Position numbers and translations under genes: made by a program. Of a DNA stretch of 64,000 nt, positions 4,671 to 20,615 are shown one piece after another (within the stretch, counting starts at the first letter, position 1; each line of letters opens with the position of its first letter). The notes under the pieces were generated by a model, which saw only the letters and a program-made list of their open reading frames with translations, had not been told where the DNA came from and ran no database searches. The stretch covers positions 62,001-126,000 of the IMG/VR virus record IMGVR_UViG_3300036781_000418; one strand, given 5' to 3'.

Positions 4671-7600
4671 TTATTCGTAGCTTGGCGCAACTGGCACTGG
4701 ATCAACAACCTTGATCGAGTACACGCTGAGCCGGGATGTTTTGAACAGGTCCGTCATCGTGTAGTTGGCCGCGCAGATCTCCTCCACCGCCGCGAAGAAC
4801 AGCTCGTTGATTTGAGCCGCTGACGCGCCGTTCCAGATTGTCGTCATAGTCGCTCGTGCGTGTTCAGGGGTGTCAAACCATGAGTCGCTCTCGTTGAAGT
4901 CGAGCACCGTGATGTAGTCCGGAACCGGAGTAGGTCCACTGTCGTCCACTAGTCTGGTATTTAGAATGGTGAACTGAAGCGTCGCGTTGACCAAGTCCTG
5001 TGGAGCCAGGGCCTGGTCGGTGGCGAAGCCGAACTGGGTCGCCGTGCCGTTTCGGGTATCGTAGGCGATCCGACGGGCGCTTGGAACGGCGTTGCCGACC
5101 GCGTCCTGTCCAGCCGAGGTGCTGGTGAGCAGCGTCCAGAGCACGGCTGGAATTACGGCACGTTGTCCAGGGCGAAGCAGCGTCCACTCAGTGTGCACGT
5201 CTTTTAGGTCCATGCCATGTGGATCGTCGCGCAGGGTGAAGTCGCGCGTGAAGCGGAGCTTGAACGTGTCGTCCTGAGCCACGACGTAGTTCAGTCCGGC
5301 CACGGCGATCGCGTTGTAGGAGTAGGACGTGCCGTTGTCAGGCTGGTGCAGGGCGTCGTGGAACGTTACGTAGGTGGACGGACCGGTCGTCAACATGTCG
5401 GCCATCGACTTCACGGACGTCTTCTTACCTTGGGCGACGCTCGAACGGTCCTTAACCCAGAAGTAGTAGATCGTCGACAGGATCGAGCCGTTTTCGTCGC
5501 GCACTGGAACCTCTACGTGCTGGTAGTCAACCTTGTACTGCTGTTGGATGAGCACGTTGTCGGTGACGTCCGGGTCAAACGCGAGCTCCACGGTGGTAGG
5601 TACGTAACCGCGTACGATCAAGTGCACCTCGGCCCCAACCGGTGGCACGAAGGACAGCGTCACCGTCGTACCACTTAGGGAGTAGGAGCCGGCCAGTTGA
5701 GCGGAGCCGTTGATGTAGACCGAGATGGAGCTTAGGGCCGTGCCGTCCGGAACTTCAAAGGTCACGGTGGACGTGTCCGCTACCACCTGGTGAAAGATCT
5801 CGTCCGCCAGCACGCGCCAAGCCGACCATGTCGACATGGTCGAGCGAACCTCGGTACCATCGTTCAAGGTGAACGTAAAGTTGGCGTTCTGGATAACGGT
5901 GATGGAGGTGTTGAACGCCACCTGGTCGACGGGCCATGGACCAACGAACGGCACCCAGCACGAATTTGGCTGACGGGAGTCGGCGTCCAGCTGCTGTTGA
6001 GTCGGCACCGTCCAAGCACGCCAACCGATGCCGTTGTACGTACCGCTGGTTGGGTCCTGGTCGTTGATCAGTGACGTCGGCAGGTTTGAGCCAGCGACGA
6101 CAGTTTGGTAGCTCACCTGGTCATGTAGGATGATCATGTCGTTCAGGCCCTGCACGATGGCCTCCATCATGGTGACCGTGTTCCAGGTGCCGGCGGTCAT
6201 GAACTTGACGTTGACACGCAGCCCAAAGTTAGGCACCGTGTAGGAGAAGACCTGGTTGGCGTAGGTTGTGAAGGTTGCACCGAAGTAGTCACCTGGCGTA
6301 ACGTCGTTCGCGTCACCCCGGTCAACACGAAGGCTGATGACTTGGAAGTCGCCAGTCTCAGTTTCAACCACGCGGAAGAAGGTCGACACGTCAACGAGGT
6401 CGGTGATCGTGCCGGCGTTGTCGGTCAGCTGGAGGGTATCAACCGGTTCGGCCAGAAACTCCAGGCCACCGATCGTTGGGGTGTAGCTCGTTACGTCCAG
6501 CGTGAGGATAGCAACGGCACCGTCCGTGGAGGTCGTCACCGACTTCATGACGAAGAGCTCTTCGTCGCCGGCGTTGTCCACCATCAGGCGCTTCGTGAAG
6601 TCTGACAGGACCGTCAGCTCGGAGAGCGGTTCAGGGGTCAGTGGATCAAGGTTCCAAGCACCAACTCGCATGCCAGCGACGATGCCACGTTCAAGGAAGG
6701 TGTTGGACTCCAGCCACAACAGGCCGTCGCCAAGGCTGGACGTACCCGCTTCAACGTACAGGGTTGAGTTGTAGTCGGTTGAACCGAAGGCGCCGCCCAT
6801 GTGAGCGGCGCCGTTTGGCACGCCGGAGTATGACCAGGCGATCGGACGCGTCAGCCAGATGCGGTCACGAACGTAGTACTTCGCGTCCGCCACCACGCCG
6901 TCCGCCTTGTCGGCGGAGTCAAGGTCGGCGTCACCAGCGTCGATGAGGGCTTGGGCCGCGTAGTCGGCTGGCGACACGGAGGACTCCACCCACTCGTAAA
7001 CGTCCACGGCGGCGTAGTCAGCCAGGGTACCCCAACGGGCCAAACGGTCCTCAACACGTGGGAAGATGACCTTGTCGTAGTACGGCAGGTAGTCGAGGCG
7101 AGTCATGTCCCACCAGACACGACCAACTTCCTTCGCGCCCCACGGCCGCAGTGGGTCGTAGTTGGAGTTGCCTTCAACCAAGGTCGACACGTTGTAGCGG
7201 GCTGGGTCCAGCTTTGAGATGATGTTGATCGACTCGAGCGCGTTCGGGGTGTGTTGACCGGTAGCTGGGTGCCAGAAGACGATGTCGTCGATCTTCTCGT
7301 TCGCCACGTAGTTGAACAGCTTCATTGGGTTGAACTTGCCAACCGACACGCCCCAACCAGTGATCGTCAGCTCGGTAAAGTCGGAGACAAGGTAGGTCGT
7401 CTCGTTTAGCTTTGTGACGTTGGCGCCGTCGACGACGCGCCAGTCGGCGATGAACGGCAACGTGAGCTGGAACGGGAAGGTTAGCCCATTGGTCGCCATG
7501 TAGTCCGCGTCAATGTTCTGGGACAGGGTCGGCAGCTCGTCGGCGGTGAAGGTGGTCGGACCGTTCAGGTCGTCGATCGAGAACCAACGGGTCTCATCGT

Positions 7601-10600
7601 CCATGTCAACTTCGGTGAACGCGGCGAAGTCACTGCCAGTTGCTGGTGCGGTGGGTGGTGTGTAGTCGAAGACCAACTTGGTAAACTGCTGGACGCAGTC
7701 GTCCACGTCGATCTTCAGTTCTGGGTAGATCTTCTGGCGGGCGTCACCGTACTCTGCGACCTTGTACGCCCAGTACTCATCGATCTTCGCATCTTGGAAG
7801 CGGTCGTTGTTTAGGAAGGCTTGGATCGACGCGTTCGTGCCCTTCAGCTGGATGAGACCACGCCAGAAGTCGAACTGAGTTCGGTTCGTCAGGTCAAGGT
7901 CGGCCATGTAGTCCTTTGGCGTGAAGCCAAGCAGGGCTAGGGCATGGGTCGTGGACAGCTCGTCCTCATAAACCTTGTTCGGGTCGTAGAAACCCTGCAC
8001 CATGTCAGTCGAGGCTTGAAGGTTGCGCTTGACCTCGTCGCCTACAAGGTAGTGACCACCGTATTCTGGACGGAGGGTGGCGGTGGCTTGCTTGCGACCG
8101 TTGAAGCGGAGCGTGATGATGCGGGCGCCGGTGAACGGATCGTAGATGAGGCCTTCACCGGTGGATGGGTTGACCTCGTTAGCCAACACGAAGATGTGTT
8201 CGTACTCGTCGAACTGGGCGTGGACGCCGAACATCGGCGCGTCAGCCCAGATCTCGGCGCGGCCGTTTGAGCGCATGACGATCAAGTCCTCGGTCTTCAG
8301 CTTGACGCCAAGCGTGTCGTACACGGCTGGGTCGGCGTCAACGTCGAAGAGGGCGGTGTCGGCGAACGGCGAGAGCAGACCCTGGTTGAGCTCAATCCAC
8401 ACGTGATCCATAAACGGATTCATCACCACACCGTCGCCGAGGTTGATGCCCGCGTAGACGCGGTCCACTAGCTTCTCAATCTCCAGCTGCCAGGTACGGT
8501 TGCGACCGGTTTCTTGGTCAATGTTGTTCTGTGAGGATAGGTTGAAGATCCAACCTTCGCTGATCAACTTGTCCGTGTAGCCGTAGATTACGTCCACGAC
8601 GTTCTGCAGGCCGGTGATGATGAGCGGCAGCTGCGCGTCCACGGTGCCGGTAATCTCGGTTGGCTGGTACCATGTGCGGTCCGTGTGGGCGCTCGCCAGG
8701 GCCTTGAACGTTACCTCGTTGTTCGATGAGTACGTGTAGTACGAAATGTCCAGGTGGCGTGAGTTGTAACCGTCAATGCGGAACACCCAGTCGGAGGCGT
8801 CGTTGGTCGCGATCGGTGCGCCCGTTGAAGACAGCACGTAGGAGCCCAGCTGCACGACCGAGACACGGAGGGCCTGGGCCCAGGTGTCGGCCGCATACGG
8901 CGAACGCTTGACCCGTAGCTCATAGGCGCTCTCAGGAAGAACCTCGGAGTCGGTGAAGACGAGTAGGTCGTTGGTTTCAACCAAACCACCGGCACGGTAG
9001 CCAAGGTTGACCTCCCAGCCGCGGTAGGCCGAGATCGCGTAGCCAGCCGAGGTGTCCACGCTGAAACCACGCAGGGCCTGTGTAAAGACCTGACCAAATC
9101 CACGGAACTGGTAGTACGTTGCTGGAGTCGCGACCATGGAGATAGTCGCGCCGTCCGCCGTGCCGGTGAGGGTGTACGTGTCACCTTGACGGAATGGACG
9201 ACCTTCGTCCTCCATCAGCAGGTTGGTGATCACGTAGCCGTCAACGGCTAGCGAGGTAGCGGTGCCTTCTTCAGCGGTGCCAAGGTAGACCCCGTTCACG
9301 TCGTAGATCGAGAAGACTTGCTTGTGGTTCGCGTCGTACGCGTCGTGGACGATCGACAATGTAAAGTCGGTTGGGGCCGTGATAAGGTCGACTGACAGTG
9401 GTTGGGTACGCACGATCGCGGCGACTGGGTCACCGTGTAGGCGGAAGCGTGGGTGGCCTGGCATCGAAACGTCGAAGCCATCGTAGCGGATGCCGTCGAC
9501 TGTGACCCACTCAAAGCCCCACAGTTCACGGAGCCAGGTGAGTGGGTCGGTGACGAAGAGCGCCGAAGCCAGCGAGTAGCGGTAGTCAATCGTCCGAGTC
9601 CAGACCGTTTCAACCGGCGAACTTTCACCGAACGTGTAGGACGCGGCTGGGGTTGGCGGCAGGGTGTTCGTCACGGCGTTCACCGAGGACGAGACGACGG
9701 TGGAGACGTACGGCGGAATGAGCATGTCGCGCGTCACGTCCACGCTCAGCTTAAGGGTAGGACGCGCGGCGGCGATCGCCGACCACATGGCCTGCGACCA
9801 GTAGCGGGCCTGTTGAACAACGACTGGGTCGGTGCCGATCGAGGCTGGAGCAGTTGACACGTACCACACCGTGCCCGAGTACTCGTAGCCTTTGGTGACC
9901 GTGAAGGTCTGCTTCAGGGCCAGTGAGGCGCTCATGTTGCGTGTCCAGCCGGCGCTCGACGCCGTCCACACACCGTTGCTGGCCTGAATGGTTTCACCGG
10001 TGATGAGGATCAAGTCGCCGGCCACCAACGTATACCCATCGATCGTGACGAGACCGTTGAACGCGGCGGGCGACGTCGTGACGACCGCGACCGCCCCACC
10101 GTTGGTGAAGCCGTTGATTGGGTTCGCCACCTGATCTGGAGATACCGGGGCCGCCCACATGGAATCCCAGTTGACTGGCTTAGTCGCCTGACCAACGAGC
10201 AACCATGGTTCAATGTTTGGGCGTGACGTTGGAATGACGCCGGTGACGGTGCCTTGGTGTGCCTCAAGCAGGTTGTACCAACGAGCTGGCACGGTGGACG
10301 TGGTCAACGGGGCAGTTTGACCGACTGTCAAGCCCGAGTAGTTCCAGGTGAACGGGTCAGTCGACACGTAGTCAGGGGCCGTTGGATCGTAGCCGTTTGT
10401 GGACGCCCACTGGGCAAGCTCACGCTCAAGGGCTGGAGCCAGGTCGCTGGACAGCGCGGTCTCAACGTCCGCCTGTGAGAAGTAGGTGTGGTGCGTTGGT
10501 GGGCAACCGTCGTACAGGCGCTGTTCAAGGTTGATCAGCACGTCGTTGAGGGTGCTACCGAAGCTGAAGCTCGTCCATGGCAGGAGTTGGTTCGACTCCA

Positions 10601-13427
10601 CGGCCCAAAGGGTACCGTTCCAGACGTACAGAACGTTCGTTGGTCGCGAGTACCAGAGGTCGCCGGTGGCTGGGTTGGACGGTGCGGACAGGTCACTGAC
10701 GACGTTGTACACACGGTAGTCCACCTTACCGTAGCCCAGTGGGTAGAACCATAGTAGGCCCTTGTACGGGAGCGACGGTGGAGTTGTCGTGTAGGAACCG
10801 ACGGCCGCGGTCACTGCGTTGTCGGAGCGCTTCACCATCGTGTTTGGGCTCAGCAGCTGGTCACGCAGGTCCAATGAGTCCGTGTACGGTGGAGACATGT
10901 GGCCGTCGTGGTGACGGAGCAGGGTGAGGCCAAGTTCGTCGTCGAAGACCAGACCAGGGGTCAGGCGCGGCGAGATGCCAAGCTGCGGGGCCGTAAGTGG
11001 GAAGCCTGGCACAGCCGCGGTCGTGTCGTACAGGACGGTCTTAACGTCTTGATCCTGCACACGCTGGGTCAACAGGTAGTCCAACAGTCGATCAGTGGAG
11101 GCCGCGTCCGTCACCACCTCAACTTCGCCAAGGTAGTTGACGAAGTGGGTGAAGAACAGGTCGGAAATCGTGTTGAGACCGACTTCGTACTGGACCTTGG
11201 CACCGTCGATCATGGACAGCGGTGTCATGTCCCGCTGCATCAGCAGTGAGGCCAGCAGGTTCTGCAGCTCAGACCACAGCTTGATGGAGCCACCGAACGC
11301 GCGGTTCTCAGTTCCACCTGGAATTTGGTTGGCGATGATACCACGGAAGTGTGAGTACATCGTACCCTCTGGAACCTCGTTGGAGTTGTCCGCCGCAACG
11401 TTGTTGTAGAACATCCGTGGAACGAGCCAAGCACCCTTGTTCTCAGTGTCCGCGTTAGGCCCACCAAAGATGTCTACCAGCGTACCGTCGTCGGCCGTGA
11501 AGACGTAGCGCACGGTCTCCTCACCACCGATGGAGAACGTAAACACATCACCTGCGGTAAATGGGGTTGCCCCAACCGTGATAGTCGCGTCAAACAGACC
11601 GTTAGAGTATGGAGTACCGGCGTTGATCACCGTCAGGTCGGTCGGCGTCGTTGGAAGCTCGCTGGTCTTCGAACCAACCACCTTAAAAGTCGTCGGTGAG
11701 GTGGCGGTCAACGTCCAGATCTGCTGCACCTGGGTTGGATCGGTGGCGGTCACCGTGAGGGCGCCGTCTCCGTTGCCCACGAAGGTCGTCTCAACCACGG
11801 AGGCGGCCTGATAACCAGGGTGCCAGATCGTCTTCAGGTCAGTGCCGTCCTTAAAGAACAGGAGCTCACCGGACTCATCCACCATACCATGGTCGAAGAT
11901 GAAGTCGGCGCTGTCGGTCGTCGTCAGCTTGACACGACGTTGAAGCTGGCCGTCCACAGCGGCCGTAGCATCCTCAACGTAGAAGAAGATGGACGTTGCA
12001 AGCTTGGCCGGCGTGCCGTCGTAACGGTAGAGGTTGAACAGCGGAAGCTGGTCAAAGTCGTACTTACGTTGACCGTAGAAGATCCCAGTTGGAGGTGCTG
12101 GGTTACCGGTGGAATCAACGTGGTTGTTCAGTTCGATGTCCGCCTGAACTTCAATAATTGGGCGAGTCGCTTGGAAGACCTTCGACAGGTCGTATGGGCC
12201 GGACGCGACATCTTCACTGGACAGCCAGAAGTTACCTTCCTGCCAATCGTTCGTGTTGGAGAAAGTTAGACCGTTGGCCGTCCAGCTCCAAGCACCAGCT
12301 GAACCTGACGAGACGTACTGCTGGCCACCGCCCAGCGTGCCGTTGACCACGAAGACGACGTCGTTCACCATCCAAGTTGACACGTCAAAGTCGACCGCCC
12401 GAGTCCAGCCCTGTGCTTGGACGACGTAGATGCCGTTCTCGGCGCCCGTGTTGTCCTTAACAAGGATGCGGTCTCCGGCCTGGAGCAGTACGCCGTCGAT
12501 CGTCTGGTAGACGTTGAGGGTGCGGACGTTGTTGACCTTGCCCTTGACGCCGGTGCTGCCGGTAAAGGTGATGCCGACGGCGGTCGACAGAAACGGTGCA
12601 TCGATCAGGAACTCATCGCCAGCCGCGAAGGACTCAGATCCAGCTGGGTCGCCGTTCTCGTCGAAGATTGCGTCGCGGACAACGTTGAACGTCAGTAGGG
12701 TGACGGTGTTCGTGCCGTCGGACACGGTGAAGTCGATGACCTGGTTGTTCGAGGTCAACGTAAAGTTCTGAGTGACGGGCAGGTAGGCACCAAGGGCACC
12801 GTTCGCCGTGACCGTGCCGGTGGTTGGGGTGTCGAAGTGAACCGTCCACGTCTGTTGGTAGAAGCCGGTACCCGTCAACACGGTGTTTGTGGTCGTCGCG
12901 ACGCGCGCGTTTACCTTGTTCAAGTCACCTGGGGCTGGACGGGCAATGACGAAGTACTCAGGTGCGAGGGTCTCGTTCCAAGTCAGGTCGACGTTCTCCT
13001 GACCAGCCTGAGCCACCCAGTAGTAGTTGAAGAAGTTCGTGAACTTGTTGAGGTCGATCGGTGGCGCGTAGTTGTTACCCTGCGAGTAGAGCCAGCTGGA
13101 CTGGTCCTTAGAGATTCCAAGGACCTCGGCCTTGCGCACGAGGTCCTGCACCGTAAAGGTGTAGGTCTCGGAACCGACCATGAAGGTGATCACTGGAATA
13201 AGGGAGTTGACCTCACGTTCCGAGTTCAACTGCGGCACGGCTGGCGCGCCCGAGTCGGTGACGGGCTGCTTGCCCACGTAGCCGTACAGTGGAACGCTCT
13301 CGTCGCGCGTCATAAACCTGTTGAACAGGTTGTTGAACAGCGACTCGCTCATTGGATTCTTCAACTCCTGTGGGTACAGGGAGTTGAACGTCTGATACGG
13401 CAGGTTGTAGTCTTTGGTGGCCATCAC
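4671..13427 (-). CDS. Giant virion structural protein (2918 aa), baseplate/tail-associated
   Basis: Very long ORF with strong codon bias. Two copies of the IDG..L..GD.IL.....NG.(Y/W) domain, and a DAKIDEYWAYKVAEYG motif I recognise from jumbo-myovirus structural proteins. TAAATA promoter upstream. Confidence 0.85.
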   Translation of the reverse strand: MMATKDYNLPYQTFNSLYPQELKNPMSESLFNNLFNRFMTRDESVPLYGYVGKQPVTDSGAPAVPQLNSEREVNSLIPVITFMVGSETYTFTVQDLVRKAEVLGISKDQSSWLYSQGNNYAPPIDLNKFTNFFNYYWVAQAGQENVDLTWNETLAPEYFVIARPAPGDLNKVNARVATTTNTVLTGTGFYQQTWTVHFDTPTTGTVTANGALGAYLPVTQNFTLTSNNQVIDFTVSDGTNTVTLLTFNVVRDAIFDENGDPAGSESFAAGDEFLIDAPFLSTAVGITFTGSTGVKGKVNNVRTLNVYQTIDGVLLQAGDRILVKDNTGAENGIYVVQAQGWTRAVDFDVSTWMVNDVVFVVNGTLGGGQQYVSSGSAGAWSWTANGLTFSNTNDWQEGNFWLSSEDVASGPYDLSKVFQATRPIIEVQADIELNNHVDSTGNPAPPTGIFYGQRKYDFDQLPLFNLYRYDGTPAKLATSIFFYVEDATAAVDGQLQRRVKLTTTDSADFIFDHGMVDESGELLFFKDGTDLKTIWHPGYQAASVVETTFVGNGDGALTVTATDPTQVQQIWTLTATSPTTFKVVGSKTSELPTTPTDLTVINAGTPYSNGLFDATITVGATPFTAGDVFTFSIGGEETVRYVFTADDGTLVDIFGGPNADTENKGAWLVPRMFYNNVAADNSNEVPEGTMYSHFRGIIANQIPGGTENRAFGGSIKLWSELQNLLASLLMQRDMTPLSMIDGAKVQYEVGLNTISDLFFTHFVNYLGEVEVVTDAASTDRLLDYLLTQRVQDQDVKTVLYDTTAAVPGFPLTAPQLGISPRLTPGLVFDDELGLTLLRHHDGHMSPPYTDSLDLRDQLLSPNTMVKRSDNAVTAAVGSYTTTPPSLPYKGLLWFYPLGYGKVDYRVYNVVSDLSAPSNPATGDLWYSRPTNVLYVWNGTLWAVESNQLLPWTSFSFGSTLNDVLINLEQRLYDGCPPTHHTYFSQADVETALSSDLAPALERELAQWASTNGYDPTAPDYVSTDPFTWNYSGLTVGQTAPLTTSTVPARWYNLLEAHQGTVTGVIPTSRPNIEPWLLVGQATKPVNWDSMWAAPVSPDQVANPINGFTNGGAVAVVTTSPAAFNGLVTIDGYTLVAGDLILITGETIQASNGVWTASSAGWTRNMSASLALKQTFTVTKGYEYSGTVWYVSTAPASIGTDPVVVQQARYWSQAMWSAIAAARPTLKLSVDVTRDMLIPPYVSTVVSSSVNAVTNTLPPTPAASYTFGESSPVETVWTRTIDYRYSLASALFVTDPLTWLRELWGFEWVTVDGIRYDGFDVSMPGHPRFRLHGDPVAAIVRTQPLSVDLITAPTDFTLSIVHDAYDANHKQVFSIYDVNGVYLGTAEEGTATSLAVDGYVITNLLMEDEGRPFRQGDTYTLTGTADGATISMVATPATYYQFRGFGQVFTQALRGFSVDTSAGYAISAYRGWEVNLGYRAGGLVETNDLLVFTDSEVLPESAYELRVKRSPYAADTWAQALRVSVVQLGSYVLSSTGAPIATNDASDWVFRIDGYNSRHLDISYYTYSSNNEVTFKALASAHTDRTWYQPTEITGTVDAQLPLIITGLQNVVDVIYGYTDKLISEGWIFNLSSQNNIDQETGRNRTWQLEIEKLVDRVYAGINLGDGVVMNPFMDHVWIELNQGLLSPFADTALFDVDADPAVYDTLGVKLKTEDLIVMRSNGRAEIWADAPMFGVHAQFDEYEHIFVLANEVNPSTGEGLIYDPFTGARIITLRFNGRKQATATLRPEYGGHYLVGDEVKRNLQASTDMVQGFYDPNKVYEDELSTTHALALLGFTPKDYMADLDLTNRTQFDFWRGLIQLKGTNASIQAFLNNDRFQDAKIDEYWAYKVAEYGDARQKIYPELKIDVDDCVQQFTKLVFDYTPPTAPATGSDFAAFTEVDMDDETRWFSIDDLNGPTTFTADELPTLSQNIDADYMATNGLTFPFQLTLPFIADWRVVDGANVTKLNETTYLVSDFTELTITGWGVSVGKFNPMKLFNYVANEKIDDIVFWHPATGQHTPNALESINIISKLDPARYNVSTLVEGNSNYDPLRPWGAKEVGRVWWDMTRLDYLPYYDKVIFPRVEDRLARWGTLADYAAVDVYEWVESSVSPADYAAQALIDAGDADLDSADKADGVVADAKYYVRDRIWLTRPIAWSYSGVPNGAAHMGGAFGSTDYNSTLYVEAGTSSLGDGLLWLESNTFLERGIVAGMRVGAWNLDPLTPEPLSELTVLSDFTKRLMVDNAGDEELFVMKSVTTSTDGAVAILTLDVTSYTPTIGGLEFLAEPVDTLQLTDNAGTITDLVDVSTFFRVVETETGDFQVISLRVDRGDANDVTPGDYFGATFTTYANQVFSYTVPNFGLRVNVKFMTAGTWNTVTMMEAIVQGLNDMIILHDQVSYQTVVAGSNLPTSLINDQDPTSGTYNGIGWRAWTVPTQQQLDADSRQPNSCWVPFVGPWPVDQVAFNTSITVIQNANFTFTLNDGTEVRSTMSTWSAWRVLADEIFHQVVADTSTVTFEVPDGTALSSISVYINGSAQLAGSYSLSGTTVTLSFVPPVGAEVHLIVRGYVPTTVELAFDPDVTDNVLIQQQYKVDYQHVEVPVRDENGSILSTIYYFWVKDRSSVAQGKKTSVKSMADMLTTGPSTYVTFHDALHQPDNGTSYSYNAIAVAGLNYVVAQDDTFKLRFTRDFTLRDDPHGMDLKDVHTEWTLLRPGQRAVIPAVLWTLLTSTSAGQDAVGNAVPSARRIAYDTRNGTATQFGFATDQALAPQDLVNATLQFTILNTRLVDDSGPTPVPDYITVLDFNESDSWFDTPEHARATMTTIWNGASAAQINELFFAAVEEICAANYTMTDLFKTSRLSVYSIKVVDPVPVAPSYE

Positions 13428-13450
13428 ACTCAGGGAAATTCGCGATGGTC

Positions 13451-13456
13451 TATTTA
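13451..13456 (-). promoter_or_regulatory. T4-like late promoter TAAATA
   Basis: TAAATA ~25 nt upstream of the 13427 start. A gp55 late sigma is encoded in the window. Confidence 0.7.
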
Positions 13457-13499
13457 GAGCTTGACCAAACCTGAGAAAATCACCTCACGAGTTCGCCCG

Positions 13500-13600
13500 T
13501 AGAGGCATTAGCTGACAGATAGTGCAGGTTCATGGTGCGGCGACACGAGAGGTCACCGGTGCGTCCCGAGACGGTGCGGTGTTGAACTCAACACCGCACC
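13500..13600 (-). repeat. Dispersed structured intergenic element, copy 1
   Basis: 13-bp hairpin (13573-13600), TCGTGTCGCCG, then the 34-nt core ATGAACCTGCACTATCTGTCAGCTAATGCCTCTA (13500-13533), which is shared with 39916-39949 and 61691-61724. Confidence 0.85.
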
Positions 13601-13610
13601 CACTTCAGTG

Positions 13611-13982
13611 TCACTCGGCCTCGTTCTTGATCCACTCGAGTGCAAGTTTCAGCTCCTCAATGAAGAGCTCTCCAGCCTCTTCAGCGTTGCTAAAAACCTT
13701 GCCATCCAGCTTGTTAAAGTTGCCGTCCATCTTGTACCAGCTGACCCGTGCACCCACTCGTGTGTCACGTGTCAAATCGTAACACAACGAAATAAACGGC
13801 AGTGGTTCATAAGAATCATTCGATATTACCTCGACAACACCTTGATTGTCCTTTAGCTCGTAGGTAATGGTCTTGTGCTTGAGCATCTTTGCGCAGAGTG
13901 CGGTCGCCTGCTTGGCCACCAACCCCGCGTGAAACTTGGCTTCTTCAAAGCCGTCAGATTCAAATAGTTGAGCTACGTTCAT
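13611..13982 (-). CDS. Putative internal head protein, CTS-like leader family (123 aa)
   Basis: MNVAQLFES leader. Clear paralog of 13979-14329 (LV.KQA.....KM.KH..I.YEL.D..G, WY..DG, EEAG.LF...LKLA). Confidence 0.7.
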   Translation of the reverse strand: MNVAQLFESDGFEEAKFHAGLVAKQATALCAKMLKHKTITYELKDNQGVVEVISNDSYEPLPFISLCYDLTRDTRVGARVSWYKMDGNFNKLDGKVFSNAEEAGELFIEELKLALEWIKNEAE

Positions 13983-14329
13983 GGCTTAGACTGCTCGTTG
14001 TACTCGCTCACCGCCAACTTTAGCTTACGCATGAAAAGCTGACCGGCCTCCTCAACGGTGTCGACAGTTTCAAGGTCGATCTCACCGTCCTGATACCATC
14101 CTACTTCAAACTCAGTGCCTGCGGAATGGTCGTCGCGTTTGATGAACGGCACCTCGTGCTCAACACCTTGCACCAATGTGACTGCGAGGCCTTCTTGGTC
14201 GTCAAGTTCGTAGTTGATCTCTTCATGCTTAATCATCTTTTCCAGATAGACGTTGGCCTGCTTTACGATGAGCTGCATGTGCAGGTGATCGTCTTCGTAG
14301 TCGCTTTCAAGTAGGTGTCGTAGTTTCAT
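13979..14329 (-). CDS. Putative internal head protein, CTS-like leader family (116 aa)
   Basis: MKLRHLLES leader, 4-nt coupled overlaps with both neighbours, paralog of 13611-13982. Confidence 0.7.
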   Translation of the reverse strand: MKLRHLLESDYEDDHLHMQLIVKQANVYLEKMIKHEEINYELDDQEGLAVTLVQGVEHEVPFIKRDDHSAGTEFEVGWYQDGEIDLETVDTVEEAGQLFMRKLKLAVSEYNEQSKP

Positions 14330-14685
14330 TGTTTATCCCCGTCATTGTCGCGCACCTTGTTAACGCGCTCGATCTCGTCCTTAAACACCTTCCAAGCGTC
14401 CGATGATTTTACGAACAGCTGTTCGTCCCAGCCAGTCTTACGCACAATTACCATGTAGTGGCGACCCATGTGGTCGCGCTCGTTCCACGCCATGATTGGG
14501 TAGTCAGAACCGATACGCGGCTGGATGTTAATGACGTGTGCCGTACCTGAGCCCATGTACATAATCCGGTACTCTGGAGCCGGTGCCAGCTTCTTCGCCT
14601 TGATGAGGAACAGCTGCATGTCCTCATCAGCATGTTCTGGAACGGTGCTGTCGACTTCGTCTTCCAAGAGTGAGTTAAGCTTCAT
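14326..14685 (-). CDS. Putative internal head protein, CTS-like leader family (119 aa)
   Basis: MKLNSLLED leader and DEDMQLF helix shared with the family. Translationally coupled. Confidence 0.7.
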   Translation of the reverse strand: MKLNSLLEDEVDSTVPEHADEDMQLFLIKAKKLAPAPEYRIMYMGSGTAHVINIQPRIGSDYPIMAWNERDHMGRHYMVIVRKTGWDEQLFVKSSDAWKVFKDEIERVNKVRDNDGDKQ

Positions 14686-15821
14686 GTTGATCCCTCTCCT
14701 CGGCTGTGCTTGTCGTTCGCCTCTTTGATCAGCTTTAGCAAGTGCACGTAGGCCTCGGTAATGTCGACATAGTGCGCCTCGATTATATCCGACAAACTAA
14801 CAAAGAAGTGCGCAAAGTGGTTGCCGATCCGACGTTTGCTACTAGCCCAGGTTGTAAAACCAATTGACGGAAATGGAACGTGCGAATTGTTGACCGGACG
14901 CAGCGCAAAGATGCCCTCTTTTGTTTTATAAAATTTGTATCGCACCGCGGCTTTTTGATTGATGGCCTTAAGCAACAGCCCCATGTCTTCGTTGTAACCT
15001 TTAACGGTTTCTGAATTGAGTTTATCGCCAAATTCGCTCTCATAAAGTTTGGCATCATTGCACTTGTCAATTTCAACCAACATAAACTTAAGAGCCTCGG
15101 CTACCGTCTTAAACTCAAAGTTAACGTGGCCTGGATGGTGGCTTGGACGCTTAACGGTCACAAAGATGTTCTTGCCATTTTTGCTCCAAAACCTGGTCTT
15201 GCTGTATTGCATTACCGGATATTTTGACGATTTATGTTCAGGAACGATGTCGAAGCTCTTCATGTCATCGTCGTTGCTGCTAATCTTGTACGACACCTTA
15301 GCCCGCTTGTTGATGGCGATGGCTGCGAGGTGCATGTCTTCAATGGTGCCACGGTACTCCTCTTCTGAGTGAGTTGAGGTGGACCTTTGACCTTCATGCA
15401 AGGCGTACACATGGTACGTGATGTTCTTGACGGCGTCAGGCTCCGCGGCCTTGTACTGTGGAAAGTTCTTCTTAAACAGCCGACTGTAGATTCGAGCTCG
15501 CTGTTCACCCTGTGGATCATCTTCGACGCTCCACAGGAACCGCTTTGGATGGTGAAGGTCGATGAACTCCTGAACGGCGGCCGTGAAGAAGCCGAACACC
15601 TCGAGGGCGGCGTGGTCGTTGGTTGGCTTCGCGGACGCGTAGGACGCGGACGAAGACGTGTCGTAGAAGGCGATCTCCCAGGCCTCTTCATCCTCGTTGA
15701 AGTCGCAGACGACGGTGATTGGCCGACCAGCAATCTTCTTACGAACCTTGAACATCGTCGGGGTGTTCTTAACCAGCTCGTAGTTGGCCCGGCCAGGGCT
15801 GAGAATTTCATCGAGCTTCAT
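14682..15821 (-). CDS. Three-module putative internal head protein (379 aa)
   Basis: MKLDEILS start and two internal repeats (EDM.L...AIN..A.V.YK), each preceded by LHE/LYE. Confidence 0.75.
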   Translation of the reverse strand: MKLDEILSPGRANYELVKNTPTMFKVRKKIAGRPITVVCDFNEDEEAWEIAFYDTSSSASYASAKPTNDHAALEVFGFFTAAVQEFIDLHHPKRFLWSVEDDPQGEQRARIYSRLFKKNFPQYKAAEPDAVKNITYHVYALHEGQRSTSTHSEEEYRGTIEDMHLAAIAINKRAKVSYKISSNDDDMKSFDIVPEHKSSKYPVMQYSKTRFWSKNGKNIFVTVKRPSHHPGHVNFEFKTVAEALKFMLVEIDKCNDAKLYESEFGDKLNSETVKGYNEDMGLLLKAINQKAAVRYKFYKTKEGIFALRPVNNSHVPFPSIGFTTWASSKRRIGNHFAHFFVSLSDIIEAHYVDITEAYVHLLKLIKEANDKHSRGEGST

Positions 15822-16188
15822 AGCTCAACCTTTCCTTAAGCAGGTCAAAGAACAGCTTTGACGCGTCTGTAAACCGCAGGAGCCGCGTGTATACACGTCT
15901 ATTGTCAGATCCAGGATGGTTGCACGTGACCACGAAGTGTTTCGGTACAACGCCACGCTGCGCTCGCTCCTCAATGAACACGTTAAGGTTTGGATAACCG
16001 TCGGTCCATTGCGCACTGTTCAAGCTAAGTACTGGACTTCGTGTGGTTCCATTCTGTTGAACTGCATACAGGTTGTTTGTCAACTTACGAGTAAGCTCCA
16101 GCGCCAAGTCCATGTCATCCGCAGCGTCAGCCCATTCGGCTTCGCTCATTCGGTGAACATCGGCTTGTTCGAAGATATCAAGCTTCAT
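15808..16188 (-). CDS. Putative internal head protein, CTS-like leader family (126 aa)
   Basis: Start re-assigned to MKLDIFEQ at 16188, which overlaps the upstream gene end. DDMDLAL helix. Confidence 0.7.
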   Translation of the reverse strand: MKLDIFEQADVHRMSEAEWADAADDMDLALELTRKLTNNLYAVQQNGTTRSPVLSLNSAQWTDGYPNLNVFIEERAQRGVVPKHFVVTCNHPGSDNRRVYTRLLRFTDASKLFFDLLKERLSYEAR

Positions 16189-16537
16189 GCTGTAGCTCCA
16201 AGCGTTCACGGAACGCCTTGAACGCCTCACTTGAGGTCTCGTAGTATTTGAAAAACCTAGAGTTGCCGTCGGTCCAGCCTTCTCTGACTGCGTAGTGCAG
16301 GATAGATCCATCTTTACGCTTACCGTTTTTCTTAAGTATCATGATAGGCTGACCGATAACATGACCAACTGGAACTAGACACATGCTGTCAATTGCCTTA
16401 ACGATGTGAAACTTTCCACCAGCAGCGTTCAAGATGTCACAGCACAGCTGTAGTTGATCAAGTTCGGCTGCCCAGTCCTCTGGGTTCATGGCGTTGAAGA
16501 ATGTTTTGCCGGCCTCGTGCAGTTGATCAAGCTTCAT
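16178..16537 (-). CDS. Putative internal head protein, CTS-like leader family (119 aa)
   Basis: MKLDQLHEA leader and EDWAAELDQLQL..DILN helix similar to both neighbours. Confidence 0.7.
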   Translation of the reverse strand: MKLDQLHEAGKTFFNAMNPEDWAAELDQLQLCCDILNAAGGKFHIVKAIDSMCLVPVGHVIGQPIMILKKNGKRKDGSILHYAVREGWTDGNSRFFKYYETSSEAFKAFRERLELQHEA

Positions 16538-16935
16538 TTCAGCGCCTCAGCTTCCTTGACGTACGTCATAAAGGTTTCCACTACCTCGTTAAGGTTTCCA
16601 GAAATGGATGCTGTAGCCCATCCTCGATGTGAACCTCTATGAGCGGTAAAGTGGGTTGGCGTTGCACCTACATTAACCGTGGTCTTTCTCCAAACCCAAA
16701 TTGTCGGGTAGGTTATCATGGATTTTTTAGGCTCTAGTATGGCGAAGCTGTTCGTTGGTGAATCCTTGTTTACCAACCTGATAATGTACTGGATGCCACT
16801 TAGGCGCTTGTTGAGTACGTCTGCCAACAAATCAAGGTTCTCAAGACCTTTGTGCCAGCTTTCTTTGTCTAGTACCATCACCTGGTTCCGCTGGCGAGCG
16901 CTGGGCTTTCTAACTGGAAGGCGGCCATCAAACAT
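16534..16935 (-). CDS. Paralog of the internal-protein family whose leader appears frameshifted (133 aa)
   Basis: ESWHKGLENLDLLADVLN helix matches the family. An out-of-frame ATG AAA GCT AAC sits at 16948. Confidence 0.65.
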   Translation of the reverse strand: MFDGRLPVRKPSARQRNQVMVLDKESWHKGLENLDLLADVLNKRLSGIQYIIRLVNKDSPTNSFAILEPKKSMITYPTIWVWRKTTVNVGATPTHFTAHRGSHRGWATASISGNLNEVVETFMTYVKEAEALK

Positions 16936-16947
16936 GGTTAGCTTTCA

Positions 16948-19900
16948 TCACTTCACCTGCCGAATGATCGTTGGGGTCAGGGCCTCGACCACGTCGATGT
17001 CCGCCACGGTAGCGGCCGACTGGAGGATCTCGTCGCCACCACACTGGACCGTGAACATGTCACCGAACGAGTTGGTGGAGTACAGCGGCACCAGCACAAC
17101 CGAGGCGATCTCCGTTGGAAGACGCTGGTGCATCAAGGAGATGAGCTCGGTAGCGTAGAACGTCTCGCCAAAGTCCCAGTTACTGATCTCAAAGTACGTG
17201 TTGATGACGTTCAGCAGCTCCTCCTTGACGCGCTCGTTCGTCAAGGACGCTCCAGAGGAGCGTACCACCTTGAACTTAGCGCGGAGCTGAGGCTCAGCTA
17301 GCTGACCAAACATCAGGCGCAGGGAACCAGGGTGGAACACCACCGTGTCGGCCAGCATCTTGTTGGTAAGCAGGTAACCGTATGAGTTGCGCAGCTCCAG
17401 TGGAGTCGGCGGCGTTGGCTTCGTCGTGCTCAACCCACGGACGAACGCGATCATGGAGTCGTAGTAACCTTGGGTCACCACGTAGGCGTCGTGGATGTTC
17501 GTCGACGACGGGTCGATAATGTTGTTGAACGGGGTAAAGTGCTGCCACATGAACGTCAAGCCATCGTCCGTGTTTGGCCCAGGCATCTTCAAGCGACGTC
17601 CCCAAAGGTTGGAGATGTCGGAGAAGGAGCCGTCGTTGGCGAACGACGTGACCGGCTGTCCACCTGAATCCTGAGGAATCGATGGGTACGTGACGGTTGG
17701 ATCACTCAACGCGAAGTATTCGTAGTTGCCCTCGCCAAACGTCTCGAACTGTAGGAGCCGGTCAGGGATCAAGTCACCGGACGAGTCCTCCTGCAGCATG
17801 TCGGACGGTACCACCGAGAGCTGGTTAAAGTCTGGAATGCCCGATGAGTCCTTCACCGCACCAACCACGTCGTAGATCTGCGACTTAGTTAGGTAGGAGT
17901 AGTTTGGGGCGACACCGTACTGGTTGCCAGGCAGGACCTTGATGTTGTCGAAGACGCGCTTCTTCGTTTCGTTGTCGAGGATCTGCTCAGCGTCGTTGTA
18001 CCAGAACTTCGTGGTCGGTGATTCGACGATCAGCGCCAAGTCACGGTAGTTGATCTCGTAGCCAATGACGTTGTTGGACGGTGCTTGGCGCAGCTTGCGA
18101 ATCAAAATGATCCATGAGTGCTGCTTCTGGGACACGTCCGTGTTGTTCAAGTTGAACAGCTGGTCGGCAAACGGTGGCAGGGTAGTGGTTGTATAGTCTG
18201 GGAGCTGGGAGGCGCCCGACAGAATCTCCCACCAGCCGTTCAAGTTGACCGTTGGGCGGCCACTAAACGTGCGTTGGGTCAGGGTACCGTCGATCGCTGG
18301 GTCCATGTCAGAGGCCGTGTCCAGCACAAACGCGTCGCCTGGCTCAAAGGCGGCACCGCCCGTCGTCTGGTTGACCGTGGCGAACATGATCGAGGACGTG
18401 AAGCCGGCCGGTTGAATGTAGATCGCCGAGCCGATGGTGTCCTTGCCCGTCGAGATGGTTCCACGCAGGTTGGAGCGAACCGAAAGGGTCTCGCCGTCGG
18501 CGCCTACTTGAATCGTCCAAACTTCACCCACGTAGTAGGTTGGGCGGACCGCTGGGTCGGCTTCCTGCTTGACGGGCACCTTGTTGTGGACGGTAATCGT
18601 GCCTTCACCAACGCCGGCCGTGTACGGGTTGTAGCGCAGACCGAAGTAGTCTTGGTCAGCGATTGGCTGCAGACCGGAACCGACGTCGCCTGGTGGGTAC
18701 TTGTTGATGCCGTCGATCGTGCGTGGGACGGCGGCCGCGTAGATGCGTGAGTCGTCCTTTGGGTTCAGCGTTGGGTCTGGAATGACGGCCCAAATCTTGT
18801 TGTCTGAGCCTTCGATGAACTCGAGTGGCTCGCCGTACCAGTGACGGTCGATCAGGCCTTGGATAGCCGTCTTCTCCTTCAACGAACCGTCTGGGACGGA
18901 GCCGTCAAGGATGTTGACGAACGCGTTGTTTAGAGTGCGCCACAGTCCAGCACGGTTGTCCTCGATGAAGACACGACGTGGTGGAGCGACGACCCCTTGG
19001 AGCAGTGGATCCGCCGCACCGATGTGAACCAGCATGTTGATCACGCCGGTGTCGTTGAGCAGCGGCTCGATGACGTTGTCGATCAACGCCTGCCCAGTGG
19101 TCGACACGGTGGTCGAGTTCAGGGTGAGGTTGTAGCGCATGGACAGGTCGTCACCGAACAGCTTGACGTTCTCGTACTGTCCCGACGCATCGTTCCAGTC
19201 AATGTACTTTGGCTGACCCGCAAACGTGCGGTTGACCGTCTTCAGACGGAGAATTGACGGGTCGCGTAGTGGGAAGGTGTTGTAGTCCTGCCCATTGACC
19301 ATGCGGTTCTGGGCGTAGTACGTGGCTGGAGCGGACTGACGGATGTGCTCGATCGTCTCCGAACCGGCGCCGTTCTGCAGGGTCGTCGTCAGGGAAAACG
19401 TGAGGGCGCACGTCTCGGTGTTACCGTTGGTCGCGGTGTAGGTGAACGACAATGGTTGGTTGACCACCTTGTTCTTCTGCACGACGACGGCCTTGTTGAT
19501 GGACTGCCGCATCCAGAACCGGAAGGAACCCTGTGGGGCCTCCGAGAAGTCACCGTCACCGAACAGGATGGCGATCTGGTCGTTCTCCAGCGTGTCCACT
19601 TCGTACTTAAAGCGGGTGGAGCGGTCGTCGTTGAAGATGAGGTTCTGCTCGGCCACCGTATCAACTTCGGTCCAACGTTCGGCGATCTCACCTTGGTCGT
19701 TCAGGCGCTGCACCCAGACGTCGGTTGAGTTGACGTTGTTTGGCAGGAACTCAAGGCGGCGATTCGGCAGCTTGTCCGTGATGTCGTACTCGATGCGGGT
19801 GATGGTGCCCTGCTTCGTGAAAGCCAGGAAGCCGGTGTAGTCGGAGCCGTCGCCCACTCCGTCGTTCGCGTAGATGATGGTAAACGGTGAGTTCAAGTCT

Positions 19901-20574
19901 GGCTCACGTTCAAACGGGCCGTTCTCGTCCAAGTCGGCCGGCACGACCTCCATCGGCACGGAGTCCAACCCCGTGTTGGCCGTGTAGGCGTACACCCCGT
20001 TGATGAAGGAGTTGTCGTCCGCGTTCAGGGAGTAGAGGTCCATGACCACGTCGTTCACCTGGAACGACTTCTGTGGCTGACCGTAGCGGGTTGTCAAAAC
20101 ACGGTTCACGACGAGCGTGAACTGCTCCTTCCAGTTAGGGTTGTTTGGGTCGTTCCAGTTGATGACCTGCCCGGAGATATCGACGCCACGGGAGTCGATC
20201 ACACGCTCCGTCGTGGAGATTGAGGAGAACTTTACCAGGCCACGGGACGCGATGTTCCGAGTCGCCTTGTACGAGATCAGCTTCGCCAGGCGCAGGATGG
20301 ACTGCTTCCGCTGGGCGGTTGTGATGAAGTTTTCATGGGCCACCATGTCCACACGGTAGGCCAGCTGTTCCGCGACGTAGGCAAACGACTCGATGTACGC
20401 GATCAGCTCGGAGCTGGCGATCAAGTCGTTGAAGACCTCGGGGTAGTAGATCCGGAGGTAGTCGATCAACGACGCCCGAATGGTGTCGAAGTCAAAGGAG
20501 GTGAAGTTGACCTGGCTGAAGGCCTGGTATACGGCCTCCCAGCTTTCAGCCGAGTTGGTGTTCCGGAACGTCAT
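16948..20574 (-). CDS. gp6: Baseplate wedge subunit, gp6-like (~1208 aa)
   Basis: FTSFDFDTIRASLIDYL...FNDLIASSELIAYIE, ENFITTAQRKQSILRLAKLISY and ETIEHIRQSAP..Y.AQNRMVNGQDY are gp6 hallmarks. Start moved to MTFRNT at 20574, downstream of TAAATA at 20601. Confidence 0.9.
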   Translation of the reverse strand: MTFRNTNSAESWEAVYQAFSQVNFTSFDFDTIRASLIDYLRIYYPEVFNDLIASSELIAYIESFAYVAEQLAYRVDMVAHENFITTAQRKQSILRLAKLISYKATRNIASRGLVKFSSISTTERVIDSRGVDISGQVINWNDPNNPNWKEQFTLVVNRVLTTRYGQPQKSFQVNDVVMDLYSLNADDNSFINGVYAYTANTGLDSVPMEVVPADLDENGPFEREPDLNSPFTIIYANDGVGDGSDYTGFLAFTKQGTITRIEYDITDKLPNRRLEFLPNNVNSTDVWVQRLNDQGEIAERWTEVDTVAEQNLIFNDDRSTRFKYEVDTLENDQIAILFGDGDFSEAPQGSFRFWMRQSINKAVVVQKNKVVNQPLSFTYTATNGNTETCALTFSLTTTLQNGAGSETIEHIRQSAPATYYAQNRMVNGQDYNTFPLRDPSILRLKTVNRTFAGQPKYIDWNDASGQYENVKLFGDDLSMRYNLTLNSTTVSTTGQALIDNVIEPLLNDTGVINMLVHIGAADPLLQGVVAPPRRVFIEDNRAGLWRTLNNAFVNILDGSVPDGSLKEKTAIQGLIDRHWYGEPLEFIEGSDNKIWAVIPDPTLNPKDDSRIYAAAVPRTIDGINKYPPGDVGSGLQPIADQDYFGLRYNPYTAGVGEGTITVHNKVPVKQEADPAVRPTYYVGEVWTIQVGADGETLSVRSNLRGTISTGKDTIGSAIYIQPAGFTSSIMFATVNQTTGGAAFEPGDAFVLDTASDMDPAIDGTLTQRTFSGRPTVNLNGWWEILSGASQLPDYTTTTLPPFADQLFNLNNTDVSQKQHSWIILIRKLRQAPSNNVIGYEINYRDLALIVESPTTKFWYNDAEQILDNETKKRVFDNIKVLPGNQYGVAPNYSYLTKSQIYDVVGAVKDSSGIPDFNQLSVVPSDMLQEDSSGDLIPDRLLQFETFGEGNYEYFALSDPTVTYPSIPQDSGGQPVTSFANDGSFSDISNLWGRRLKMPGPNTDDGLTFMWQHFTPFNNIIDPSSTNIHDAYVVTQGYYDSMIAFVRGLSTTKPTPPTPLELRNSYGYLLTNKMLADTVVFHPGSLRLMFGQLAEPQLRAKFKVVRSSGASLTNERVKEELLNVINTYFEISNWDFGETFYATELISLMHQRLPTEIASVVLVPLYSTNSFGDMFTVQCGGDEILQSAATVADIDVVEALTPTIIRQVK

Positions 20575-20600
20575 GTAGTGGATCGAGGTTAGCGATCCAC

Positions 20601-20606
20601 TATTTA
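20601..20606 (-). promoter_or_regulatory. Late promoter TAAATA
   Basis: Lies ~27 nt upstream of the gp6-like start. Confidence 0.7.
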
Positions 20607-20615
20607 GCCAGAACC

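Follow-up and report, generated by a model that had tools for sequence, protein, structure and literature searches.

In phage T4, head-internal proteins bind to the scaffolding core via an N-terminal capsid-targeting sequence (CTS) of 10-20 residues, which is later removed by the protease gp21; N-terminal propeptides of this length are cleaved off the internal proteins (Ips), Alt and gp24 (PMC5694885). The Ips of the T-even phages have only the packaging leader in common, are encoded by hot-spot genes and each block a different GmrSD enzyme (PMC12373910, PMC3012670). For the phiKZ-like/SPN3US giant phages, many ejection proteins with N-terminal propeptides were described, which are cut by a T4-like prohead protease and are probably targeting signals (PMC5694885). 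The present analysis concerns a stretch of 64,000 nucleotides (nt), referred to as the window, which comprises bases 62001-126000 of the 342,591-bp IMG/VR virus record IMGVR_UViG_3300036781_000418 (57% GC). Within the window, positions 13611-16935 are filled by seven minus-strand open reading frames (ORFs), A1 to A7, termed Array A. With a probability of roughly 0.45, we regard their products as capsid-targeted, injected accessory proteins analogous to those of the T-even Ip loci. The record represents a 342.6-kb soil jumbo phage whose closest isolate is the Ralstonia phage RsoM2USA, within the wider Rak2/PA5oct group.

Array A is located between the gene of a baseplate wedge subunit and the gene of a virion protein of 2918 amino acids (aa). 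All ORFs were read without an alternative genetic code, and the following features were identified in the window:

16534..16935, minus strand: A1, 133 aa; unit domain at about residues 21-133, basic N-terminal stretch, isoelectric point (pI) 9.9, no intact leader.
16928..16948, minus strand: leader-like mini-ORF (MKANHV and stop); its first base coincides with the final base of the wedge stop codon, and its frame differs from that of A1.
16178..16537, minus strand: A2, 119 aa; leader MKLDQLHE and one unit.
15808..16188, minus strand: A3, 126 aa from the MKLDIFEQ start; leader and one unit.
14682..15821, minus strand: A4 (whole gene), 379 aa; distinct N-terminal domain and two units.
15402..15821, minus strand: N-terminal part of A4; leader MKLDEILS and a phrog_16075 / DUF6934-like domain of about 130 aa.
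14685..15371, minus strand: C-terminal part of A4; two tandem units, A4b (15027-15371) and A4c (14685-15026), detected as two hidden Markov model (HMM) domains.
14326..14685, minus strand: A5, 119 aa; leader MKLNSLLE and one unit, the modelled member.
13979..14329, minus strand: A6, 116 aa; leader MKLRHLLE, pI 4.5, net charge -16, paralog of A7.
13611..13982, minus strand: A7, 123 aa; leader variant MNVAQLFE, paralog of A6.

The start of A3 was set to 16188 (MKLDIFEQ), which is not the first ATG of the ORF. An earlier note on this DNA had described the array as seven paralogs of about 120 aa, mostly linked by 4-nt overlaps. Seven coupled ORFs were indeed found, and four of the six junctions (A1/A2, A4/A5, A5/A6 and A6/A7) are 4-nt ATGA overlaps, the remaining two overlaps being 11 nt (A2/A3) and 14 nt (A3/A4) long. 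However, A4 is much larger than the other members and contains two units, which results in eight unit-like domains in seven genes. The GC content is 0.49-0.51 within Array A compared to 0.58-0.61 in the flanks, which agrees with the higher AT content reported before. Likewise, the acidic (D/E)(D/N)(M/L)xL helix, the strands of the beta body and the C-terminal EA..F..L helix that had been described as common features of the units could be recognized in the alignments.

An 8-residue leader of the form M-K-L-x-x-L-(L/F)-E, or a variant of it, heads six of the seven genes. The exception is A1, upstream of which the mini-ORF at 16928-16948 looks like a broken leader, either through a real frameshift or through an assembly error; in this region the single available contig matches the window sequence. 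The assumption of a leader common to the array therefore holds for six genes, whereas the leader of A1 is broken and the motif is not specific for Array A. To quantify its occurrence, every ATG was scanned for M-[KNR]-[LVIF]-x-x-[LIFVM]-[LFHIM]-[ESDQ] followed by at least 60 further codons, resulting in at least 31 ORFs genome-wide, at least 25 of which lie outside Array A. In a crude set of non-overlapping ORFs, the motif was found at 23 of 473 N-termini versus 67 of 108,337 internal positions, an enrichment of about 80-fold. At the DNA level, 19 sites were counted in this genome versus none for the reversed control, and 9 and 12 sites in two relatives; no enrichment of the DNA pattern was found in the phages XacN1 or PA5oct.

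Throughout the genome, the leader tags proteins with unrelated bodies. Leader-bearing arrays were found at genome positions 11444-13658, 133888-135356, 208702-211806, 214320-215183 and 335055-337865, in addition to Array A and window positions 24359-26248. The bodies that follow the leader are leucine-rich-repeat-like (judged by eye), Amidoligase_2, DUF6934-like or members of at least four small alpha/beta families, which were not connected by hhalign. In most cases, residues 6-8 of the leader are L-L-E, L-F-E or L-H-E, and variants found in relatives are MKLIELFE and MKVSELFE. Since the leader codons vary at synonymous sites and the DNA upstream of the leader genes is not conserved, the constraint acts on the leader peptide.

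Several other leader-bearing genes were characterized alongside. Array B (window 24359-26248, minus strand) consists of four coupled paralogs of about 155 aa with the leader variants MKLHLFE, MKLDLFE, MKLTSLLE and MKLALFE. It is related to genes at genome positions 335808-336706, and hhalign gave no link to the units of Array A. Leader-bearing proteins of 200-270 aa, which appear leucine-rich-repeat-like by eye, are encoded at window positions 21975-22796 and 22793-23389 (minus strand) and at genome positions 133888-135356 (plus strand). They have similar C-termini (...AEL, ATL, AKL, AQL), and neither Pfam nor PHROG gave a match for them. The leader MKLDVLFE heads a 394-aa protein (window 33164-34348, minus strand) that matches Pfam Amidoligase_2 with 31.6 bits (cut-off 22), and therefore an enzyme carries the same tag.

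A homolog of the T4 gp21-type protease (Peptidase_S77, PF03420; 88.9 bits versus a cut-off of 27) is encoded at genome positions 129743-130354, with the PF03420 match at 129812-130219. It adjoins the likely portal, scaffold and capsid genes, which were assigned by their position only. The prediction of a complex between this prohead protease and A5 resulted in a score of 0.00, which is no verdict and counts as evidence neither way.

Similar to the tagged proteins of this genome, the T-even Ips (Ip1, Ip2, Ip3 and others) are small, otherwise unrelated proteins with one short N-terminal leader. Both systems further have a hypervariable hot spot, a gp21-type protease, a leader ending in hydrophobic-x-Glu and a single tag on diverse cargo. 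The leader of the T-even Ips (MKTYQEFIAE) comprises 10 residues, whereas the leader found here (MKLxxLLE) comprises eight. The number of tagged genes is about 30 in this genome compared to three in T4 and about ten across the T-even phages. Unlike the Ip genes, many of them are organized in tandem paralog arrays and multi-domain fusions, and Array A is located inside a tail operon. The T-even Ips are non-essential, packaged and injected proteins, and for the proteins described here packaging, cleavage, injection and any anti-restriction activity would follow by analogy.

Homology of the leader to the T4 CTS MKTYQEFIAE is not supported, as the similarity is a loose pattern (M-K, a hydrophobic pair and Glu) and the lengths differ. 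In T4 (NC_000866), the N-termini are MELITELFDE for Alt, MAKINELLRE for gp24 and MKTYQEFIAE for IpII/III. Those of Alt and gp24 are the T4 sequences closest to the leader variants MKLIELFE, MKVSELFE and MKLNSLLE, which is a resemblance of short motifs on unrelated bodies. T4 Alt is a head-packaged, injected ADP-ribosyltransferase, and none was confirmed at this locus. In the phiKZ-like/SPN3US phages, ejection-protein paralogs with identical N-termini occur as well (PMC5694885). Their propeptides are mostly longer than 100 residues and these phages belong to another clade, whereas the tag described here is 8-9 residues long.

A further parallel to the T-even Ips is the genomic site. Array A is flanked by the following genes:

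16948..20574, minus strand: gp6-like baseplate wedge gene (phrog_10646), start taken at the ATG at 20574.
4671..13427, minus strand: gene of the 2918-aa virion structural protein (phrog_10938 match), the downstream flank of Array A.

In RsoM2USA, XacN1 and PA5oct the giant gene directly follows the wedge gene, with gaps of about 105, 65 and 6 nt, respectively. Because the two genes are adjacent in these phages, Array A is an insertion. Furthermore, 58 IMG/VR loci with DNA downstream of the wedge gene were analyzed, 41 of which also allowed the giant gene to be placed. In these 41 relatives the distance between wedge and giant gene ranges from 52 to 5100 nt and the cargo differs. Among the cargo are genes of other families that carry the leader, DUF6934-like genes and genes of endonucleases which appear GIY-YIG-like by eye, and the GC content of the cargo is usually 2-8 points below that of the wedge gene. 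The locus is thus variable among relatives, and the invariance that the earlier note had named as a refutation of its gene accordion was not observed. The accordion is also supported by the copy number of the unit family: with the unit profile, 11 domains were detected in this genome, whereas three near-complete relatives and RsoM2USA have none.

Two related contigs carry members of the unit family. The first, L085, is a 2.6-kb metagenomic contig with a similar array, in which the ortholog of A4 has one unit instead of two; its N-terminal domain is 56% identical to that of A4 and the units about 25%. The second, L087, is a 242-kb NCBI metagenome contig with its family members directly after the wedge gene. 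The comparison of these loci supports gain, loss and shuffling of units, and Array A is very probably a lineage-specific accessory array in a hot spot. As in the T-even phages, the hot spot contains differing and often leader-bearing cargo, and this parallel was therefore counted for the packaging reading.

On L087 (positions 8001-9365), the genes directly behind the wedge gene are two unit-family genes and a gene of a leader-bearing repeat protein. The next genes encode acyl-carrier-like (PP-binding) proteins and not the giant virion protein. At the same site of two other relatives (L022:13561-15642 and L025:13603-14331), leader-bearing paralogs of 229-242 aa (phrog_11975) were found. Conserved motifs of the type PL(W/F/Y)RG, S-x-F and NEIM, reminiscent of an R/S/E-like triad, had suggested an ADP-ribosyltransferase for these proteins, which was not confirmed by Pfam, the PDB profile search or PHROGs.

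The units themselves are strongly diverged. In pairwise BLAST and phmmer comparisons, A6 and A7 were the sole clear pair (blastp 36% identity, E = 2e-18; 36-38% identity overall), and all other pairs were marginal. For a more sensitive comparison, leave-one-out HMMs were built from the sequences without leaders and searched against a set of 5868 ORFs, drawn from this genome and from 79 related loci. Every left-out member of A1 to A5 ranked first, with E values of 1.4e-5 (A1), 4.1e-3 (A2), 2.7e-6 (A3), 2.5e-8 (A4) and 4.7e-4 (A5), and A1-A5 with their six domains therefore form one family. A6 and A7 were not recovered among these ORFs by the A1-A5 HMMs. A sequence link between the two groups was rejected on the basis of hhalign (probability 8%) and of the enlarged unit HMM, to which A7 has a marginal full-length match (E = 0.02). 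The assumption that all seven genes are paralogs is thus borne out for A1-A5 and for the pair A6/A7, while the connection between the two groups consists of the predicted topology only.

A second array of the A1-A5 unit family is located at genome positions 11444-13658 (hhalign probability 93.6%, E = 2e-7, 101 columns). The paralogs are about 20-30% identical and have no 1:1 orthologs except for the N-terminal domain of A4. Core positions are conserved in an alignment of 19 diverged unit copies. No Pfam or PHROG match was found for A1-A3, A5-A7 and the units of A4; the search of the unit profile against PDB sequences yielded E values of 0.18 or worse, DNA and protein BLAST of Array A against 50,697 phage records yielded nothing real, and a word search with A6 returned only A6 itself. 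In an exhaustive profile search of 1.8 billion proteins, only the two true non-self relatives on L085 and L087 were detected. Three long repetitive matches of this search were judged by eye to be spurious. The unit family is thus nearly confined to this lineage. For the N-terminal domain of A4, residues 28-124 match phrog_16075 (E = 3.6e-8), and DUF6934 matches five of the 13 aligned members of its family (best E = 1.3e-7), A4 itself not being among them. This domain recurs at the same site in relatives, and neither of the two families has an assigned function.

For A5, an AlphaFold2 model was calculated with a family alignment of 19 rows. The model has a predicted local distance difference test (pLDDT) value of 85.5 and a predicted template modelling score (pTM) of 0.77, with values below 50 for residues 1-9 and above 85 for the body. 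It consists of a helix (17-33), five strands (39-44, 51-56, 64-68, 77-82 and 86-91) and a second helix (94-116), and the leader is predicted to be a disordered appendage outside the fold. The AlphaFold2 model of A6, for which the alignment contained A7 only, has a pLDDT of 60.7 and the element order of A5 at nearly identical positions; the ESM Atlas model of A6 has a pTM of 0.73. The structure search with A6 and the 50 top matches of A5 have at least ten chains in common, including 4h62_Q, 5n9j_W, 4hs5_A, 9t2w_A, 8rd8_D and 2fki. A single topology, a sandwich of helix, five-strand sheet and helix, is therefore likely for all eight domains, as far as these models can tell. The all-versus-all HMM and AlphaFold comparison that had been proposed for the array thus gave the same element order for A5 and A6 and no sequence link for A6/A7.

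No match at E ≤ 1e-3 was found by Foldseek with A5 in PDB and BFVD. An exhaustive structure aligner listed the C-terminal domain of Med17 (Z = 8.5), the C-terminal domain of T4 MotA (7.2), TriTu (6.8) and CyaY/frataxin (6.6), which cover 78-97 aligned residues at 3-14% identity with Z values within the tool's stated background for unrelated arrangements. For CyaY/frataxin, the root-mean-square deviation to A5 was 4.6 over 90 residues and the Z values for A6 were 5.6-6.9, again in the background range and with no sequence signal. These four proteins and HPF/RaiA are two-layer alpha+beta sandwiches, and the A5 model is arranged alike (helix, antiparallel sheet, helix). The ESM Atlas search returned hypothetical viral clusters only (template modelling (TM) score 0.6-0.7). 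In an Atlas cluster matched at TM 0.62, an AcrVA2-like family was assigned to 19% of the members. Anti-CRISPR and immunity proteins (AcrVA2-like, AcrIIA11, AcrIF5 and TriTu) are weak look-alikes with Z values of 5.2-6.8 and no sequence or strong structural similarity. The fold of the T4 internal protein IPI* is unsupported for the units, as the 50 top matches listed by each of the two PDB searches do not include IPI*. With generic matches of Z ≤ 8.5, the predicted fold assigns no function to the units.

The transcriptional boundaries of Array A were analyzed by means of the following elements:

20600..20606, minus strand: TAAATAG motif, 26 nt upstream of the probable wedge start at 20574.
13573..13600, minus strand: perfect 12-bp stem-loop without U tract, beginning 10 nt past the stop codon of A7.
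13493..13549, no strand assigned: dispersed intergenic repeat (about 60 nt), one copy of which borders Array A on its downstream side.
13450..13456, minus strand: TAAATAG motif, 23 nt upstream of the start of the giant gene.

The motif TAAATAG was counted 57 times in the genome compared to 11 times for a reversed control, and most of its copies precede a gene start of the same orientation by 20-36 nt. Sites in the window include 13450, 20600, 27566, 27928, 28695, 37878, 39786 and 42906, among others. By its likeness to the T4 late promoter, TAAATAG may be a late promoter, and the copy at 20600 is likely the promoter of a transcript comprising the wedge gene and the array. The gap between the wedge stop codon and the array is 12 nt, and inside Array A no promoter-like or terminator-like site and no TAAATAG was found on the gene strand. 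The stem-loop has a predicted RNA folding energy of -29.6 kcal/mol (z = -3.67; none of 200 shuffled sequences was as stable) and probably marks the 3' end of the transcript. Because of the bracketing TAAATAG motifs, the 12-nt gap, the overlapping starts and stops, the lack of internal sites and the hairpin at the end, Array A was placed in a late context. TAAATAG also precedes several other leader-bearing genes, among them the pair at genome positions 133888-135356, which is located in the head module just past the capsid gene. Proteins made late alongside structural genes would be well placed as virion cargo.

The repeat at the downstream border has 11 copies in the genome, the others being located at genome positions 9017, 50503, 101924, 123699, 158810, 202556, 234597, 278189, 305978 and 323685. 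It has a core of about 26 conserved bases, occurs in mixed orientation relative to the neighbouring genes and is also found at the ends of other contigs in the soil metagenome. Rfam gave no match in the intergenic region with the repeat.

Array A is best explained as a set of small accessory proteins that was expanded in tandem within this lineage, at a site that is a recombination hot spot. Read-through from the late-type promoter of the wedge gene would lead to late synthesis of the proteins, and the leader, acting like the T4 CTS, would direct them into the prohead core. There, the gp21-type protease may cleave behind the L-x-E site and thereby remove the leader. The proteins, about 110 aa long after maturation, would be injected together with the DNA and act at once; their most likely role is that of specific binders or inhibitors directed at host defence or at host proteins. 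An anti-defence or host-takeover role, as proposed in the earlier note, is plausible by analogy. Since the leader tags unrelated proteins, however, the mechanism considered here shifts to virion packaging and injection, away from ordinary early effectors.

The support for this mechanism is circumstantial, and late co-transcription, packaging, cleavage, injection and target were all inferred. Several observations weigh against it. The presence of leader-bearing proteins in virions and their cleavage are deduced, and the published virion proteomes are those of phages without the leader (PA5oct, XacN1); the proteome of RsoM2USA, which comprises ten bands only, does not correspond to the leader-like ORFs of this phage. 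The leader is shorter than the T4 propeptides and only loosely similar to them. Many of the cargo proteins are acidic, as is A6, which seems awkward for co-packaging with DNA; T4 IPI* was described only as having an asymmetric charge distribution (PMC3012670). TAAATAG is not found near some leader-bearing arrays, e.g., at genome positions 11444-13658, and its late-promoter role is itself putative. In addition, the matches of the predicted fold are generic and IPI* is not among them, and the protease-A5 complex prediction remained without a verdict.

Alternatively, the proteins could act in the cytoplasm (anti-defence, host takeover or regulation) and never be packaged, with the leader serving as a docking site for a common partner, in protection from or targeting to proteolysis, or in efficient translation initiation. 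We consider this explanation less likely than packaging, although accessory regions of phages typically contain small, fast-evolving, AT-richer genes in tandem duplication. Small inhibitors and immunity proteins are also found among the weak structural look-alikes (TriTu, Z = 6.8; AcrIIA11, Z = 5.5; PsiB, Z = 5.1), as is the Atlas cluster with its AcrVA2-like members. The missing late-type motif near some leader arrays also fits a cytoplasmic role, and by eye no obvious Shine-Dalgarno sequence or other ribosome binding site was seen upstream of the leader genes. However, a role at the level of translation fails to explain the conservation of L-x-x-L-L-E in the peptide with free synonymous sites. 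Array A is moreover embedded in and coupled to a structural operon, and its tag, a predicted disordered appendage, is found on very different proteins including enzymes and ends in the type of site that is cut by a protease family encoded in the genome.

The coupling to the wedge gene could also indicate accessory components of the baseplate or tail, or assembly chaperones that act with the wedge and giant proteins and whose copy number and sequence track variation of the host surface. The position between two virion genes, a probably common transcript and the family member of L087, again directly after the wedge gene, are in line with this idea. It is nevertheless improbable, since a second array of the unit family lies far from the tail genes (genome 11444-13658) and the site is without such genes, or contains unrelated cargo including homing endonucleases, in most relatives in which the wedge and giant genes are conserved. 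Because these relatives do without the units, the units are dispensable for baseplate assembly. There is an even smaller chance that the array is decaying or selfish filler, i.e., passenger genes of little current function spread by homing endonucleases or repeat recombination. The GIY-YIG-like (by eye) endonuclease genes at this site in relatives, the NUMOD3 gene at window positions 4086-4667, the dispersed repeat at the border of the array and the apparently broken leader of A1 would fit such an origin, but each of the seven frames is open and tightly coupled to its neighbours, the fold is confidently predicted (pLDDT 85.5) with core positions conserved across 19 diverged copies, and the leader is under constraint at the peptide level.

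Beyond the single locus, the most useful result is the clade-specific tag, by which Array A becomes the visible part of a far larger group of proteins that are probably packaged. The tag was found on at least 30 proteins, about 5-7% of the genes, which comprise tandem families of small putative binders with a sandwich fold, repeat proteins, DUF6934-like proteins and an amidoligase-type enzyme and appear to be shuffled among hot spots within structural operons. Tentatively, and with the odds rather against it, this could mean that a clade of soil jumbo phages relies on one 8-residue tag to pack a very large and varied arsenal into the capsid, from which it would be co-injected. The tagged cargo would then exceed the three Ips of T4 by an order of magnitude. 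One short motif would serve as a sequence rule for the injected proteome of an uncultured jumbo phage clade, giving access to proteins that act in the first seconds of infection and are otherwise very hard to find. The T4 CTS has already been used for loading foreign proteins, and the leader, if it is a packaging tag, could likewise be a short handle by which such proteins are brought into large capsids. The unit family represents a compact, fast-diversifying binder scaffold without known relatives, which occurs as singles, tandems and fusions and whose members are candidates for screens of defence inhibitors. Even without packaging, an N-terminal octapeptide that is conserved throughout the genome on unrelated proteins still demands an explanation.

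The upstream flank of Array A matches the gp6-like baseplate wedge subunit family phrog_10646 with E = 6e-255 and is annotated as baseplate wedge in relatives. The complete ORF (16948-20679) encodes 1243 aa, and its top isolate relative is RsoM2USA with 45% identity, followed by XacN1, the Stenotrophomonas phages CM1 and RAS14 and then the PA5oct/Rak2 group. In alignments of the 1243-aa ORF with its homologs, similarity begins no earlier than residue 35-36. The first 35 codons (20574-20679) are without counterpart in the homologs and the TAAATAG at 20600 lies in this part, so that the true start is probably the ATG at 20574. The downstream flank belongs to a family annotated as virion structural protein, and its homologs RsoM2USA ORF361 and PA5oct EST35_0128 were detected in virions by mass spectrometry. 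Of the two baseplate genes between which the array had been placed, the upstream one was confirmed as a wedge gene, whereas the baseplate label of the downstream one appears to go beyond its phrog_10938 match. Among public sequencing runs, the locus is contained in a single one, a soil DNA metagenome from which the assembly probably originated; its 51-kb contig is identical over the stretch with zero variants.

Between the wedge gene and the genes of the repeat proteins, three coupled paralogs of 149, 126 and 138 aa are located at window positions 20616-21818 (minus strand). Pfam gave no match for any of the three, and the PHROG scan of one of them (21025-21405) was empty as well. Their common C-terminal motif is ARYAWLxFAAMIAREQA. 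Two genes beside the structural genes probably encode homing endonucleases. The first (window 4086-4667, minus strand) contains a NUMOD3 motif (Pfam E = 3e-6), and the second (window 27888-28664, minus strand) has an N-terminus that appears GIY-YIG-like by eye.

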